From Botryllus schlosseri (lineage: Eukaryota), in contig CM119375.1 in assembly GCA_051294905.1 (NCBI GenBank), forward strand, positions 13,392,001-13,456,000: a stretch of DNA of 64,000 nt, in the 5' to 3' direction. Under the pieces are notes generated by a model. It was not told the origin of the DNA, did no database searches, and saw only the letters and a list, made by a program, of their open reading frames with translations. The position numbers and the translations under genes are program-made. Positions 34,701 through 43,700 of this stretch are shown piece after piece; the first letter of the stretch is position 1, and each line of letters begins with the position of its first letter.

Positions 34701-37700
34701 AAAGACCACATTTTGGTCGCATGACTAAAAAAAAAGGTCAACTGCCCAGTTCCGCTCCCGATATACAGTTTTCCATCCACATTCTCCATTGGTTGACTAA
34801 AAAAAAAGGTCAGCTTTCCGGCTCAGCTCCCGAAATACCCGTTAGAGCGTTACTTCAGTGCTGATTTACGGTATTTCCGTCAAATTTGGCCGTGTATTTC
34901 ACCAAAATTCTCAAAAAACAGTGACGTAATTGCCAAATATTTCCAGTAAAAAGCTGGTTGCATGCAAAATCGAAACAATTTTCATGAAAAATCGAAAAAG
35001 TTGCAAAAAGTTGCATGAAAAAAATGGACAAAAAGTTGCACTATAAGATTCCTTGACAGGGCTTGAAACAGCATTCTACATAACTTGCGAGTATTTAGGA
35101 AGCTGTAAAAAAAAGTTGCAAAAACTTGCCCTAATTATGAGACATGGTTTGACATAGTGAGCAATGTTACGTTAGGTGTGGTACTTCTGACTTGTGCCCT
35201 GCCCGGAATCCAAAGGGTAATGAGAAATCGCGTTATGCTAGAACAGTAGTTTCATTTGTGTTTCTGAATAATCCGCACTTTTACATACTACATAAATCTT
35301 AAAGATCTTCTTGGAGGTACAGAACTTCAATATACAACTGAATAGTATATTCGTATCGAAATGAACCCGAATATTTTCGGCTGACACTCGTCAGGGGTAA
35401 TCGTCAGCAACTAGTAGAGTATTGGAAAGAAGATTATATAGATCAAATAAGTGAGTGTTCAATGTACTATTTTAAGATGGTCCACAAACTCCATTTGTTG
35501 ACAATAGAAATACATCAGCCCAAGCTTCGTCAACAAAGGGAGTTTGTGTACCATCTTGAAATAGTTCATCGAACACTCTCTTATTTGATCTCATTTCATG
35601 CTGTGACGTCATATTTCGAGATACGATTGTTGATATACAATGTTCTTTCCAATTCTCGACTAGTTGCTGAACGAGTGTCAGCCGAAAATATTCGTGTTCA
35701 TTTCAATTTGAATATACTATTCAATTACATGATCTTGCTAGGTTTAACTTGTTCGCTGCTGTGGAGTTGGGGTTCAATCTAAGGCAGTTCGCCTTTCGAA
35801 AATACCCTGCCGGTTCAACACTTTATAGGGCTTTTTGAACTGAGTCTTTGGGGTCAAAATTGTCCGCAGTCAAACCAGACCGATTTGTTCGAATTCCCCG
35901 AAAAAATTGTGAAGCCGTTTTAAAATTTACCAGGAAATCGCGGAGCCGTTAATCGATCTACGAGACGGTGTGAAGCAATTGCGAAACGACAAAACTTTTC
36001 GGGGCATCCTGGCCGTTCTGAAAAGCATCGGGAATTTCCTAAACGGATCCAAGGTACGCTCAGTACTTGCCTTTACCAGCCGTGTCAAACTTTAAAGCCT
36101 CGGCTTAACAGGCGAAAGGCTTTGATGTGCGGTATCTCTCCAAAGTCCCTGAAGTGAAGGACACTGTACACAAACAATCACTGTTACACCATCTGACACA
36201 AATGGTACTCGAACACTTTCCGAATTCGACGGATTTCTACTCTGGAATCGGGTCGGTGACCAGGGCTTCGAAGGTAACGCGCCATATGGACCTTGTTTTC
36301 ACATTCCTACGGTGACAATTGTGTGGGTTTTGTCGGGATAGGCTATTCTTAGCAGGTTACCTCGATGTTTGATTAGTGTATTGTAACAATAGCTACGTGT
36401 GACTGGGAGAGGACAATGCCTACATTAGTTTACGTACGTCGAACAATGGAATAGGGTTTGATGTCGAGATTTTATATTCGATTGCTTTGTTTCGGCGATG
36501 GTGAATAAACCCGGCTTTGATGGTTTTCGAGCCGCAATCGACGCCTCACCAGGAAATCATTCTGCAACGTTGAGTTGAATTCCTTTTGGTCTTTTATGGT
36601 CAATTTGCCTCACTGGCAGTATTTGTCACCGTATGGAATACCCAGTGGGATTAAAAATAGATTTTTAACTCAGCTTCCTTACTTGCTTTCATTTCCTGTA
36701 CAATTTGGATGCATTGCCATTTCACTTTATCCACCCCAACTATTTGTCGACATGCAACGATGTAAAATGACTAGAAATGAAGGTCTCCAGGAAGTAGTTT
36801 CAAGGAGTAGAATTGGCCGAGAGATTGCGTAATTTCAGCGATTAATCGACTGTTGCTACTTTCTAAATTGCAAGTTGTATATTCCAGGCTAATGCAAAAT
36901 AACTAAAGATACCACAAATGATTGCAATCTTCGAATAAACATGTAGTGACCGCAATGCATGGGCTGCTTCATGCTTTCTATGACAAAATCACTATTTCTC
37001 TAACGCTGCAAACTTGTCCCCAATCTACTTCCTTCTAAATCGAATGTGCAAATAGCATTTTTGCTTAAAAACTGTTAAGGACAAGTGGAAATAACCTAAA
37101 ACAGAATTGCTGGAGTAGTTCAACAAGGGCAAAATCTGCTTGAGTCGTTTGGATAAGTAGTATTAGTGTTACTAACCACTGTTCTGTTCGTGCTAGCAAC
37201 CTTATTTTCAACCTACCTCCTTAATGACCACAGGTCGACTTTGTCTTGCTGGAGGAAACGTTGGCATCGCTCGAGGTCCGGTGCAAGGCTGCTTGGGACC
37301 ATCTGAAAACGATAGCCCGGCATGAAACCAAAGCGCAGCAACGGAACAAAATGTCTGATTTTCTGCTCACCGCCGGCAGGAGGATTATTACGCTCGGAGT
37401 GGTGCATAAGAGATTGCTGAATCGGTAAGCGTAGTTTTCTGACATCTTTCAAGTTCTATGCGAATTTCCAATAACTTTGAGCAGGGGCGGCCAACCCGTA
37501 GCCCGCGAGGTGATTTTCGAAATTAGTTATATCATAAAAATGAATTGCCCACAGATTGTGAACTTTCAAGGCCGACCAAAAATTAGTCTGGCCGCAACAC
37601 TTGGGATGTTGGTGACTAAAATATCAGTTCCGACGCATTGGCAGGTCCATGGGCCAGTCACATTTTTGGTAGATCTTCGTACACTACAATAAAGTATAAT

Positions 37701-40700
37701 GATTCGCGGTAGATTTATCTTACGTGTAAAAATTTTCGTGCAATATGTCGTCACTATATTTCTTGCTTTTAATATTTGTTATCCCCTCCTGAAAATTACA
37801 GAAAAACACCTAATATACCAGATTGAGTCTATCTATGTTCGCACTTACGAGAAAAAGTGTCGTCCAACATGCGACCTTGCGTTTGCGCTCGCAGAAAGAC
37901 CGTCAACAATCAAACTTGGGCACAAAATGATTGAGGCTTGTCGGCCGAAGGTTTCAATATCGATATGTCCTTGCACACTGAGCCCAACGGTATGCGGCAA
38001 ACCCGCAATATACTCAAGTAACAATATTATTGACTTATAAACTTATAAAAAAATTGGCGCGTAGCTTGTGGCCCGCGAAATGGTTCGTCAATCGCGCGTG
38101 GCCCTCTGGCCGAAAAGGTTGGCCACCCCTGACTTTGAGCCATTTCCGGATTGGTTGTTATAGAAACATGAACAGATAGATCGATTGTTTTATGTCGTTG
38201 TGCAAGCGATAATCCAGCACCAGGCCGCCGCTTGTTCAATTGATATCCATCAAGTAATTTGGATTTGCAAATTTGAAAACCGCTTGTCTCTGGACTAGTC
38301 AATCCGTGCCTGTCTCAACTTTTCGGCGTCTTACCCTGGTCGTTTCCGCCACAGGTTTCACGAAACTCTCGTATTCTTCGGGTTGTCGCCACGCGAAGCG
38401 GTCGACACGACACCCTCGTCGTTCTGCCGCATGATATCCGAGTTTGCGTTGGAATACAGGACGGCGCGCGAGAGGGCGCTGACTCAGCAGATGAAACGCC
38501 AAAAGCGTGGCGAGAGGAATAAAACGCGGGGGAAAATGATCACAGAGGTATGAGACATCTGTTTTCTGTACGGCGTGTTCTTCTGTCTTTTGACGCTGGT
38601 AGCACGTCAGGGGACGGCAGATGTGGTCAGTATTGAAGTAGGTATCGCCTAATTGCACTGCTTACTTGAGTACTATGATTTTATACTTCTTACACTTCTG
38701 CTCCACAGTTTTTAAACACATTTACTCAGTTTTTGGAGTTTGTAAAAATTGTAATGTACTGTACTTAACTACTGATCGTGTCTGGGTTCGTGTTGTTCTC
38801 TGCGCCACTCAGCTCGCTTAGACGCAACGTATGCCATTTGTCAAGTACTGCATACTGCAATATCCAATCTGTATTGAAAAAGCAATAAAACTTTGTCTTC
38901 TCGTGTCTGTTGAAATTGTTCAACGATATCTCCGACTCCATGTCGGCAATAGTTGCCGGTTGTCAGCACTCGTGGCGCCTCCATCGTAACTATGCTTTCT
39001 TTCTCTCTCTTTCTTTTCTCTATCTCTTTCTTGTCGTCAAGGGAGAGATCTTGTCGGACAGCAGCGAACCGGAAAGCGTCGACCATCATGTTGTGAGTGA
39101 TTTTCAGTTCCCGCATTTCTTCTTTTATCCGACTGAAATATGTCCCCATCGCCACTCTTTTTTTCCTTGTGCTGCTGCCAAAATATGCGAATATTCTGGC
39201 ATTGTTTATTATGATGTTCATCTTGTTATTTTCAACTAGTTTCGATGTTGTTTTTTCATCTACTAACATCCCGGATAGTCACAATGTCGCTCTCGGGTAT
39301 AAAGCGAAGCTGTTGACCGAATAGTTTGCAACCTATGTGGTTGAAATATGTATGCAGAGCTCTGTTTTTGAGCTTGTGTTGGGCCGTTAACCTGCGGATC
39401 CTTATAAAACTGCAAATTCCATCCCTGTGAATGTTGTGGAGGGTGTGGTCGGCCACGCTGCCAAAAAGGTGCCATGGCAGATACGGCCGTGGTACTGAAT
39501 GGATGGGCTGGGTCTTGTCACTATGGCTGCCCTTGCCCAAGTTATCTACAAAACATTGCGGTAGAGCCCCTCGTAATCTTGTGGTGTTTTGAAAGAATAA
39601 GATTATTAATAAACTGTCTGCTTCAGCCTTATATCCAAGTCCGTTGGTGCTATTAAGTAAAGAGGGCTTTGCTCCTTTTGAGATTCAGGGTAATCTCACG
39701 AGCTAAATTATTGTCTTGTGTGTATTTTCAAATAAAATAAATCTGCATCTACTCATTATTACTTAGCTACACTCAATAATACTTTAGATAATGGAGATTT
39801 TGTCTTCTCGATATACATGCCATGTCATGACTTGTAAAGTTGCTGGTGGCAACTTCAGGTTTTGCAATGCCAAAACGACTGATGACATCATCGCAATACA
39901 TGTCCATATGCCAAGTACCATGATAAACAGACCTTACTACCGGCAATATAACAACATAGCTCAGCATCCGAACACTTTATTTGTTGTTGTATGTAGCCAT
40001 ATTTCAAGCGCTCAACATAGCGATTGTTCCATTGAATTCATCACATGTAATTCAATAGCGGGGACTGGGAAGCGGCCTGTGTAGAGATTTTACAATACAA
40101 TGTGAATTAGTGACATTCCTTTTCCATTCAAGAGAAGGTGGTTGGCGTTTTGTGGTATGCGATCGGACCCGTTTAAATTTATGATCATATTAAGCTAGCC
40201 TTAGTCCGCTGCACAGTAATCAATTGCCGTTCATTGTCCTTGTTACATTGGATGAGTCGACGAAAAGACAAGCCTACGCATTAGCCAATGTTTTGTGTCA
40301 TGGCAGTTCATGTTACGTTGCGTGCATTACGCCACAGTCACAACATGCAAAGGACTTTACTCACTTGATTTGATTCCCGAAATCTTATGCGATAGCAAGC
40401 GGTATACATGTTGCATTAACGGTGTGCTCGAAACTTAATTTATTATCTGACAAGTGACATCCCAATATTAAAGTGCGCTCACCTTGCTAAAATGAATTTC
40501 GATGGGATTCTTGTTTCTTTATAAGATGCTGGGCTAGTTAGTTAAAGTATGGTATGGCTTTTTCCAGAAATGACTTCATCGCTAGAAACTTATCTAATGT
40601 ATCGTATTGATGATTCTCGTTCTTGATCTACTGCAAAGTTTGAAGCAGCATACAGGATGTTGAAATTCCAACTCCCGTTAGTTGTGCATGGAGCAAGTTC

Positions 40701-43700
40701 ATGTATAGAAGTTTCTCAGATTGCGGGGACAGATTATACCAACGTGTTACGTACAATACCGAACACCATACTTAACACGGGGGGGTCTCAAAATAACAGA
40801 TACCTTGAAAAGCCCTGATTTTGGCATGTTCATTGATCCAGTTCACTTAGCACTCTGTGTGAATTCTTTGGAAGATATGATGCGTTTCATAATTTAGGTC
40901 AAGCTGTATCAGGTCATCCGTATCCCATGTTACGCGCCGTTGACCTGTGATATTTCATAACTCTTCCATTGTTCGCAGTTTTTGTCCTGTGTGCAATATA
41001 CATTGTAAACTATTGTCAACGCAGCTAGTACTGAAACGAACTTTGCAATTTTGCCAGACACGCAAGTTCTCGCAGACCGAGGAACAGATAAAACAAAAGC
41101 AAATGGAAATGGCCCTTGGACAAGGCGATGACTCGGTGGTCCAAACGACCACGAGGCGGAGACAGCGCGGCAGAAACTCCAAAGGTAGGTTCCGACACGC
41201 CATTTACGTGGCGTACTTACAATGGCTTTATTTCGTTTCAAGGCAGCAGTCTTAGAACATTACTAGAGCACCAAATTCTTCAAAGAGGTTTGGTCGTAGT
41301 CGGTTAGATTCACATTTAGCTACTGCCAATCACACTCTAGCACAGTATCATTAGGGCTGGGCATAATCATGTACCGTGGGGGGATCGAGTATTTTACTAT
41401 TGCCTATTATGACATCAAAGCAGGATGAATATGTACCTTTTTTGCGGAGAAAAGAAAATAAGAAAATAGGGCCAGCAAAAATAATTAAGAATTTCTTGTT
41501 TTGGACACTATGATACCACCAGTTGAAGTTTTACTCCAATGGTGTGACGAAAGTATAGAGTATATTTTTGATACAGCAACTCTTAGTGCACAGTGGGTTT
41601 ATTTTAGTTGTTTGAAAACATAAACTTTCACTGCTCGACTCAGATCACTGGAATTTACATGAAACTCAAATATTTGGAATACCTGAGTTGTTGTGCCCAG
41701 CCCTAAGTAGCCTATAATTCGTACGTTCAACATAGTTTTAGTAATTCTCATAATTGCATTATTGAGATTTTGTGACAACATACACCATTACCGCATTTTT
41801 TTATTTGATTCGCTACACTGGCCTGTGTAGAGGCCTCGCGTTGTCTGATTCGAGTGTTTTTTCGCTTGTACGTATTCTGTAACACTTGATGTGTAGTGAA
41901 AGCCTGGGTGCTTGATAGAGAACCGGCGATGCATGTCCAAGTATGTGTTTGACGTTTGTTTAGCGTTGACTTTCCCATTGTCTCCGGACGCCTGCGTGCC
42001 AATTGACGCGCTCTCTGTAATAGTATTGCCTGTTTTTAGTCGTTGCTATCCTGTGCGTTTCCGTGTGCCGCACTGCCCCGGAGTTGAGATTACTCACACA
42101 TGACTAACTACATTGCATTTTGCAATTCGATCAGTGTAATTCGGAGTTGTTGGATTTGTTTAACATGTTGCTGAGTGACTCGACGCTTGCAACGTTGTGC
42201 TGCAAGCAGATTTCCAAGAATTTCTGCTCGCTTGATTACTTTCTCTTCATTCTATATCCTGCATCTAAATCCGCGCTACGCTACGACTTGCAACGTTGTG
42301 AAATTCTACCCGTGTTCATACGGTCAAAGTATCATTTGATGTGTTGTTTTATATATTCATATTCAATTCAAAGCACGAAGCATTGGCTGTGGAGAATTAG
42401 TCCTACGTTTTCAAACTGCCATCCATCCCGAAATGTGTAGGGTAGATTGTCGTATGTCTAGTAGACCTAGGTTTCTAGAACTAGGCTACCTTCAGAACAT
42501 TGGCACTCGGATAATATTATTTGAAAAATCTCATTTGTGCTGAGACATGAACCCTCAGCCTATGGCGTACCTGGATCTCGATCTGGCTTACTTGTGTCTG
42601 TGCCTTAGTTGCCCCTCCCCCGAATCTACTTTTCGGGACTACTCAACTACTTTTCATACCTTTACCTTCTGCTTCTAAGTATGGTTAACACACTTGCGAA
42701 TCGCCAGTTTTACTTGTAATTGAGTAGAAATTTACATTTTTGCTTCTAACATGCTACTCGAGGACCAGCAACAACTACTTTGAGCTTTGACTATCTCCGC
42801 CAGTCTTATATTGATGACTGGTCCTCGAAATGTTCACCATACGGCGTCTAGGCATGTTGAATTAACTAAGTGCTATATATATCACAATTCATGCTCGTAT
42901 TCAGGAAACGTTCATTTTCAAATTCATGAATGCAATATTGATTCATCGCTCTCATAATAAGAGTTACAGTGTATTACAATTATAATGCCTAATTCACCAA
43001 GTGCCGTGTATCAAAATTCAGCTCATATTAAGTGAAACGTTCGTTTCATTATTAAAAATAGTTATTAATAGTGCTGAATTCAACGTGCTGGATTCACTGG
43101 TAACCCTACATATCACACAGGAAATGATGAAGCCTCTCCTAATATTCCGAACGGACACGCCGACGCAACTTCCCCCCGGAAAGAGCCGCTCGACATTACC
43201 TCATCGGTCAGGCGGCGAGGGTCGCGAAAAATCGTCGACGACCACTCCGACGAAACGATCATGGACCAGCTGGTGAAGGCGGCCACGCAAACGCCTCACG
43301 AACGCCAGCGCAGAAGACGGGCGCGCAACTCTTCAAGGAAATCGCGTAAGTGCTCTGCCGGTTTGAAAGGGAAATTTTGCTATCCCCGAGCGTCTAACGA
43401 TTTGTGAAGTTCAGGGACACGAGAGCGGGGATTGTTGGCAGGCAGACGGTTGTCGCGAAGCAACTTGGGCGAGTCCGACGATAGTCTCGAGATACACAGA
43501 CATGATTTAGGAAGGAGATAACGGCGTGTGTTGTCTAACCGAGGCCGGCGAGATGTGTGGAGTGTTGTTGAGCTGAATATTCGTGATTTATCTTGTGGTT
43601 TGTTACTGACTTATCAGGAAAGATTACTGATGTGTAGTTGCCCAGGTGGAAAATATTGACAAAATATAATCAATGATATTTGCGCAAGCTGCCTTAGCCA

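Follow-up and report, generated by a model that had tools for sequence, protein, structure and literature searches.

FHOD3 is a cardiomyopathy gene, and the role of one of its muscle exons is contested. This exon, named T(D/E)5XE, is 24 nucleotides (nt) long, encodes 8 residues at the FH2 domain's C-terminal end, and is specific to striated muscle (Iskratsch et al. 2010, PMC3002041); it is exon 25 in mouse and exon 26 in human. It was reported to create a CK2 site and to affect targeting and p62 binding (PMC3002041), and has been described as necessary for CK2-controlled targeting to myofibrils and for the avoidance of p62, whereas Kan-o et al. found that neither sarcomere localisation nor actin assembly requires the T(D/E)5XE region (PMC3324543). 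Does a tunicate FHOD gene carry a comparable exon? The question is raised by a 64,000-nt stretch of the Botryllus schlosseri genome (assembly GCA_051294905.1, contig CM119375.1, positions 13,392,001 to 13,456,000 of the forward strand; hereafter the window, in whose numbering all positions are given unless another locus is named). A sequence-only reading of the window had proposed a hidden acidic exon at 39042-39092, in a gene for a FHOD-type formin, as the counterpart of the vertebrate exon, whose function it took as established; that function stands as reported by Iskratsch et al. and is disputed by Kan-o et al. We conclude that 39042-39092 is very likely a real cassette exon that is under selection and conserved among tunicates.

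A probable cassette exon in the intron after the FH2 domain

The host gene lies on the + strand, from about 10.8 kb to past 45 kb of the window, and its GBD/FH3, FH1, FH2, and DAD-like tail regions all match FHOD proteins. It is the one FHOD-type gene of the 495.5-Mb genome. Its best tblastn match is the FHOD protein of the tunicate Styela clava (1700 bits in 23 segments, the variable middle region included), with a protein identity of ~62%, and its tail sequence is of the tunicate type; the Branchiostoma FHOD3 proteins (P0013, P0030) have just ~58% identity to it within the last FH2 exon. The parts of the gene that surround the candidate are as follows.

38355-38547, + strand: last exon of the FH2 domain, ending ...KTRGKMITE in phase 0, donor GTATGA (RNA joints 37424 to 38355 and 38547 to 41058; translation; tblastn to FHOD proteins)
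38548-39041, + strand: upstream intron, 494 nt, partly retained in low-depth unspliced RNA contigs (38518-39130 in RNA set X1 and 38549-38919 in RNA set X4)
39042-39092, + strand: probable 51-nt cassette exon, phase 0-0, 17 stop-free codons (sequence; similarity to the Styela clava cassette; same intron and phase in relatives)
39093-39098, + strand: consensus 5' splice site GTGAGT, read from the sequence
41058-41184, + strand: constitutive tail exon, 127 nt, beginning TRKFS (RNA joints 38547 to 41058 and 41184 to 43121)

The symmetric 51-nt exon, its CT-rich tract, and its GTGAGT donor were all found where the sequence-only reading had placed them, inside the intron that separates the last FH2 exon (RGKMITE, 38547) from the tail exon (TRKFSQ, 41058). 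The acceptor ends in cttgtcgtcaag, with its last base at 39041, and insertion directly after RGKMITE, as had been proposed, agrees with the end of the upstream exon at 38547 in phase 0. The encoded peptide has an N-terminal part made of hydrophobic residues followed by S-D (EILSD) and a His-rich end. The stretch is single copy within the genome. Exon-like segments were sought with a filter set post hoc from the candidate itself (at least 80% pyrimidine at -22 to -3, a GTRAGT donor, a length of 24 to 150 nt that is a multiple of 3, and an open phase-0 frame); 39042-39092 was the sole segment on both strands of the window to pass, and block shuffles yielded 0.17 such segments per window.

Homologous cassettes in other tunicates

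Relatives were gathered with the last FH2 exon as query against 1.8 billion representative proteins and then by family searches, and the sequence after RGK(M/T)I(T/I)(D/E) was read directly. Isoform X1 of Styela clava (XP_039262232) reads RGKMITE-EEIFSDASEEPDDFVFHM-TRKFS, and isoform X2 (XP_039262233) is without exactly those 18 residues, which are encoded by a separate 54-nt exon (L003 34767-34820, bounded by ag and gttagt) 752 nt into the orthologous intron. A pelagic tunicate represented in marine metatranscriptomes has mRNA contigs that contain GPILFSD(K/N)EYSDEEEYFA within an uninterrupted open reading frame of 4113 nt, as well as mRNA contigs without the cassette (P0057, P0417); in its genomic contigs the cassette is a 54-nt exon (L006 945-998) that follows the upstream exon after a 459-nt intron. 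The P0002 group, a fourth lineage represented by metagenome contigs, has a 51-nt segment between AG and GTGAGT, DFFSEQEAASDEELLFG, located 445 nt into the same intron (L013 10629-10679) and ranking 8th of 16,078. The search in other tunicates that had been suggested for this exon therefore returned homologous cassettes in three further lineages, each a separate 51- to 54-nt phase 0-0 exon lying 445 to 752 nt into the intron after ...RGK(M/T)I(T/I)E, a range into which the window cassette (494 nt) fits. Included and skipped forms are both on record for Styela (annotated isoforms X1 and X2) and for the pelagic tunicate (mRNA contigs), and the skipped joint alone is on record for B. schlosseri.

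At the level of the peptide, the window and Styela cassettes are identical at 8 of 17 positions with one gap (EI[LF]SD[SA]SE-P..H), which makes the local BLOSUM62 score 34. The six frames of the window contain 52,675 other stop-free 17-mers, and not one of them reached this score (maximum, 31); of composition-preserving shuffles of the peptide, 0.1% did. The summed-score ranks of the remaining tunicate cassettes were likewise extreme. This peptide-level null was used because the cassette is too short for a tblastx or blastn statistic: between the orthologous introns, both programs gave chance-level matches only, among which the cassette region came second at 22 bits, and the rest of the intron could not be aligned.

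The Styela and window loci also have in common a single extreme CT tract just upstream of the cassette and TCTTCTT at +25; the Styela cassette differs in being one residue longer, in its GTTAGT donor, and in its distance from the upstream exon (752 and not 494 nt). The cassettes of the pelagic tunicate and the P0002 group (54 and 51 nt, 459 and 445 nt after ...RGK(T/M)I(I/T)E) are built as a hydrophobic pair, S, D/E, a spacer, S-D-E-E, and a hydrophobic end. The window cassette conforms to the pattern of a hydrophobic pair, S, and D/E followed by a second Ser in an acidic run, whereas those of the pelagic tunicate and the P0002 group are more acidic and have canonical S-D-E-E sites. The pelagic tunicate differs further in being without the extreme upstream CT tract.

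In the FHOD3 locus of Ciona intestinalis, the orthologous intron contains an unannotated 57-nt candidate cassette, DDVFLDDVFVLTDDDLINF (L004 35944-36000), with a GTGAGT donor and a downstream tract that is 95% pyrimidine and in the top 0.01% of the locus. Its peptide resembles those of the other cassettes only weakly (p about 0.01), and all five annotated isoforms skip it. No convincing cassette was found in the orthologous intron of Clavelina.

Flanking sequence and possible splicing regulation

Three elements of the flanking intron sequence bear on how this exon might be regulated.

38989-39039, + strand: CU-rich polypyrimidine tract; nowhere else does the + strand of the window have 40 nt with at least 90% pyrimidine
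39099-39220, + strand: downstream pyrimidine-rich intron segment, its best 40- to 80-nt stretches in the top 0.04-0.08% of the window
39261-39267, + strand: TACTAAC (ACUAAY, the core QKI site), at chance frequency by sequence count and unconserved

The 38-kb Styela locus likewise has just one 40-nt tract with at least 90% pyrimidine, immediately upstream of its cassette. The zone free of AG before the window cassette acceptor is 73 nt long; such zones span 69-73 nt before the window, Styela, and pelagic-tunicate cassettes versus 27-53 nt at neighbouring exons, the value of 53 nt (exon 38355) having been computed one base off. Downstream, TTCTTCTTTT occupies 39117-39126, with TCTT at +26 and +29 from the donor, and TCTTCTT occurs at +25/+26 in both the window and Styela. 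The matching downstream segment is in the top 0.01-0.2% of its own locus in Styela, the P0002 group, and the Ciona candidate.

Repression by PTB-type proteins has a signature, namely CU-rich sequence on either side of the exon combined with a distant branch point. The window cassette resembles exons repressed in this way (alpha-actinin SM/NM, alpha-tropomyosin exon 3, c-src N1; see also the PTBP1 table in PMC7230170) in being flanked on both sides by long CU-rich tracts that contain UCUU and CUCUCU, in an extended stretch free of AG, which points to a distant branch point, and in a skipped default state. The proposal that PTB might bind here has thus gained comparative support at the sequence level, the tracts being exceptional on both sides and recurring in relatives. 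Mammalian PTBP1, like RBM20, has been reported to act on FHOD3 exons 12-14 and not on the exon at the end of FH2 (PMC7230170).

The QKI motif fared differently. TACTAAC is present about 170 nt downstream of the cassette, as had been noted (39261-39267, +169/+170). ACTAAY occurs in the window at 0.48 per kb, which predicts about 1 copy in the 1965-nt downstream intron and 0.15 per 300 nt; one was found, at +170. Within 300 nt of the cassette, ACTAAY is absent from the Styela, pelagic tunicate, P0002-group, and Ciona candidate loci. We therefore rejected activation of this exon by QKI as unsupported, on grounds of chance frequency and lack of conservation. In mouse heart, a Fhod3 isoform does change when QKI is lost (PMC10202634).

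Relation to the vertebrate FHOD3 exon

The position that had been claimed for the vertebrate exon was borne out. Mouse primers S6, S7, and S8 of Kan-o et al. put exon 25 between ...RGKMITD and S(GKF), at a codon boundary in phase 0 (PMC3324543). Lamprey Fhod3b reads RGKMITD-TDDEEAAE-SGKF, and a catfish protein has SEEEEDE at the same place; the junction and phase are those of the window cassette. At the locus of the pipefish Syngnathus typhle, a 24-nt micro-exon encoding SDDEEESE lies ~165 nt after ...GKMIVD, behind CT-rich sequence. The annotation of this locus (L018 23386-23600) uses a donor 60 nt downstream of ...GKMIVD, which adds VEMDATVSCEATVAPSPQAQ ahead of the SDDEEESE micro-exon; this extension reflects alternative use of a 5' splice site or else a misannotation.

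Like the vertebrate exon, the window cassette is an alternative, frame-preserving, phase-0 exon after ...RGKMIT(D/E), acidic, and with S/T in a CK2-type context. Within it, S-E-P-E fits the minimal S-x-x-E consensus for CK2, and S-D-S-S is a possible primed site; both are read from the letters of the peptide. The cassettes of its relatives carry S-D-E-E or S-D-K-E, and some tunicate cassettes end in S-D-E-E-E, S-D-E-E-L, or S-D-E-D-E, endings that recall vertebrate T-D-D-E-E in a way that is suggestive only. The two exons differ in size (24 nt and 8 residues versus 51 nt and 17 residues), the window peptide has no alignable similarity to TDDEEAAE or SEEEEDE, and muscle specificity, CK2 phosphorylation, and the link to p62 all come from mammals only. 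Thus, the part of the counterpart claim that concerns position, phase, and acidic S/T content stood, and the part that concerns descent did not go as far: common descent of the tunicate cassette with the vertebrate exon is plausible, neither favoured nor disfavoured to any great degree, and unproven, because its sequence does not match T(D/E)5XE and no statistic establishes homology for an acidic peptide of 8 residues.

The alternative that survives best, and that we hold to have nearly an even chance of being correct, is that the exon is real and arose independently of T(D/E)5XE, the phase-0 intron after FH2 being a recurrent site of exon gain and the acidity convergent. The suggested search in lamprey and amphioxus bears on this directly. 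Lamprey has TDDEEAAE at the same junction, and isoform X18 of Branchiostoma floridae (P0030), known from protein annotation and set against B. lanceolatum FHOD3 (P0013), has after RGKMITD a 17-residue insert, EFGRRFPEAHADLSEMM, that is unrelated. Therefore, optional inserts occur in this intron in all three chordate subphyla, and since the amphioxus insert is unrelated, the intron after FH2 may be a recurrent site of exon gain. Insect fragments with variable inserts at the same junction, the different lengths of the vertebrate (24 nt) and tunicate (51-54 nt) exons, and the lack of any demonstrable, statistically meaningful similarity for so short an acidic peptide also favour separate origins. 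Arguing for a shared origin are the common intron, phase, and acidic S/T-bearing content, the closeness of the tunicate endings S-D-E-E-E/L and S-D-E-D-E to vertebrate T-D-D-E-E and S-D-D-E-E-E, the standing of tunicates as the sister group of vertebrates, and the CT-rich sequence that also precedes the fish micro-exon.

Should descent be shared, T(D/E)5XE could be a shortened descendant of an ancestral cassette of ~17-19 residues (a hydrophobic pair plus S-D/E, then [S/T]-D-[D/E]-E-E) that the shared ancestor of tunicates and vertebrates already possessed, under the control of flanking CU-rich tracts. We put this forward tentatively, as a scenario with somewhat less than an even chance.

RNA evidence in B. 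schlosseri and explanations without a functional exon

RNA from B. schlosseri consisted of contig sets X1, X4, and X5 plus the raw-read run X23, and these runs carry no tissue label. Across 38547, 39042, and 41058, where the sequence-only reading had suggested looking for spliced RNA, the skipped joint from 38547 to 41058 was present in X1 (depth 26) and X4 (depth 8), contig sets from two studies. The presence of this skipped joint without an inclusion joint means that the cassette is not constitutive and, in the sampled RNA, amounts to no more than a minor or tissue-restricted form.

Several observations weigh against a functional cassette in this species. No joint into 39042 or out of 39092 was found in any of the four runs (X1, X4, X5, and X23), and the sole contig spanning the cassette (38518-39130 in X1, depth 8, with exon depth 26-32) is unspliced. 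All annotated Ciona and Clavelina isoforms are without the cassette, the Styela X1 and X2 isoforms are pipeline predictions from automatic annotation, and the cassette peptide is short and of biased composition. Finally, a collection of 5.8 billion protein clusters held no protein of 31-100 residues sharing three 5-residue words with the cassette frame, a blank that is uninformative in that the FHOD protein of this species itself did not turn up there. The lack of inclusion joints is weak negative evidence, because RNA contigs lose minor isoforms, the tissues are unlabelled, and X23, with 0-2 raw reads per junction of the FHOD gene, is too shallow to decide on the cassette.

These observations are what would be expected if 39042-39092 were a pseudo-exon, that is, a chance exon-like stretch of intron or an unspliced relic in a gene that makes only the 38547 to 41058 form: only the skipped joint in X1 and X4, an unspliced contig over the stretch, a blank protein search, and Ciona and Clavelina annotations without the cassette. 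We consider this improbable. The open frame, the phase, AG and GTGAGT, and a polypyrimidine tract unique in the window are all present, and the peptide matches the Styela cassette better than does any other 17-mer of the window, though the rest of the intron is unalignable. At ~62% protein identity, a neutral stretch of intron would not have retained frame, phase, splice sites, and peptide pattern together, which is why we take the cassette to be real and under selection.

A still weaker explanation is that transcripts left unspliced at 38547 end in the intron as ...RGKMITEV-stop (AATAAA at about 38886) and encode a formin without its tail and DAD, the supposed exon being 3' untranslated region or intron; the frame does stop two codons into the intron, and the unspliced contigs (X1, depth 8; X4, depth 4.6) have 2-4 times the depth of other intronic pieces, but contigs cannot reveal RNA ends, the scattered intronic pieces in X1 at depth 3.6-4.5 point to a background of pre-mRNA or DNA, and the conserved peptide and splice sites of other tunicates would be left unexplained, so that we judge it quite unlikely.

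Two observations on the RNA stand apart from these arguments. The unspliced coverage of 38548-39130, provided by the contigs 38518-39130 and 38549-38919, could reflect slow splicing or an isoform truncated before the tail. X23 raw reads cover both strands of 39230-39629 at a depth of about 1.4-2, exceeding the FHOD exons of the same run, and show C>T at 39473; they possibly come from another transcript or a repeat.

How the cassette may act

With the exon taken as a real cassette, the following mode of action can be proposed. The cassette is skipped in most transcripts and would be held in a repressed default state by a PTB-type pyrimidine-binding factor acting through the flanking CU-rich tracts, with UCUUCUU at +25. 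Inclusion, which we infer for this species, would occur in particular cells only, muscle or heart being the obvious guess. The insert would add serines in an acidic context (S-E-P-E, and S-D-S-S if primed) that an acidophilic kinase, CK2 for example, may phosphorylate. Phosphorylation of these serines would add negative charge beside the strongly basic end of FH2, where the tail leaves the domain, and this charge could change tail-dependent activity, autoinhibition, or partner binding.

Other features of the gene

Three further exons and several other observations complete the description of this part of the gene.

37234-37424, + strand: FHOD exon before the last FH2 exon (RNA joint 37424 to 38355)
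41243-41287, + strand: second cassette exon, 45 nt, frame-preserving between 41184 and 43121 (RNA, run X5)
43121-43345, + strand: tail exon with the DAD-like core (RNA joint 41184 to 43121; its 3' end is inferred solely from a GTAAGT donor)

The 45-nt cassette in the FHOD tail is separate from the exon proposed by the sequence-only reading. In run X5, the joint from 41184 to 41243 has a depth of 26 versus an exon depth of 88, and a loose end past 41287 continues into the first bases of exon 43121; runs X1 and X4 skip this cassette. Contigs of run X1 carry an in-frame 6-nt insertion (CCAACA) at 43159 in the tail exon, plus many single-nucleotide polymorphisms, from which the sampled population appears to be highly polymorphic. 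The intron preceding the last FH2 exon contains a dispersed repeat of ~650 bp at about 37480-38130, with more than 4,900 candidate copies in the genome at ~78% identity, and this repeat accounts for RNA-contig depths of up to 4,757 and for loose read ends at 37869 and 37902. It has no Rfam or tRNA match, and Rfam and tRNA scans over 37.2-43.4 kb found nothing.

Implications

Tunicate isoforms with the cassette were already known from automatic annotation; in the literature searched, the Styela cassette isoform is undiscussed, and no paper links tunicate isoforms to the vertebrate exon. The finding indicates that the annotations of this genome and of the Ciona genome probably miss exons. If the sister group of vertebrates has, at the same junction, an acidic cassette that is conserved yet differently built, then it is the position and not the exact sequence of this exon that evolution has kept, and the splicing switch may be older than vertebrates. 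If the ancestral-cassette scenario is true, a phosphorylatable acidic patch beside the basic end of FH2 predates both vertebrates and the duplication that gave FHOD1 and FHOD3. An animal with a single FHOD gene, and with heart, body-wall, and larval tail muscle as in ascidians, would offer a simple system for testing what an acidic, phosphorylatable insert next to FH2 does, and under that same scenario, dissecting the cassette in the heart and muscle of ascidians might resolve the dispute over what the vertebrate exon does.

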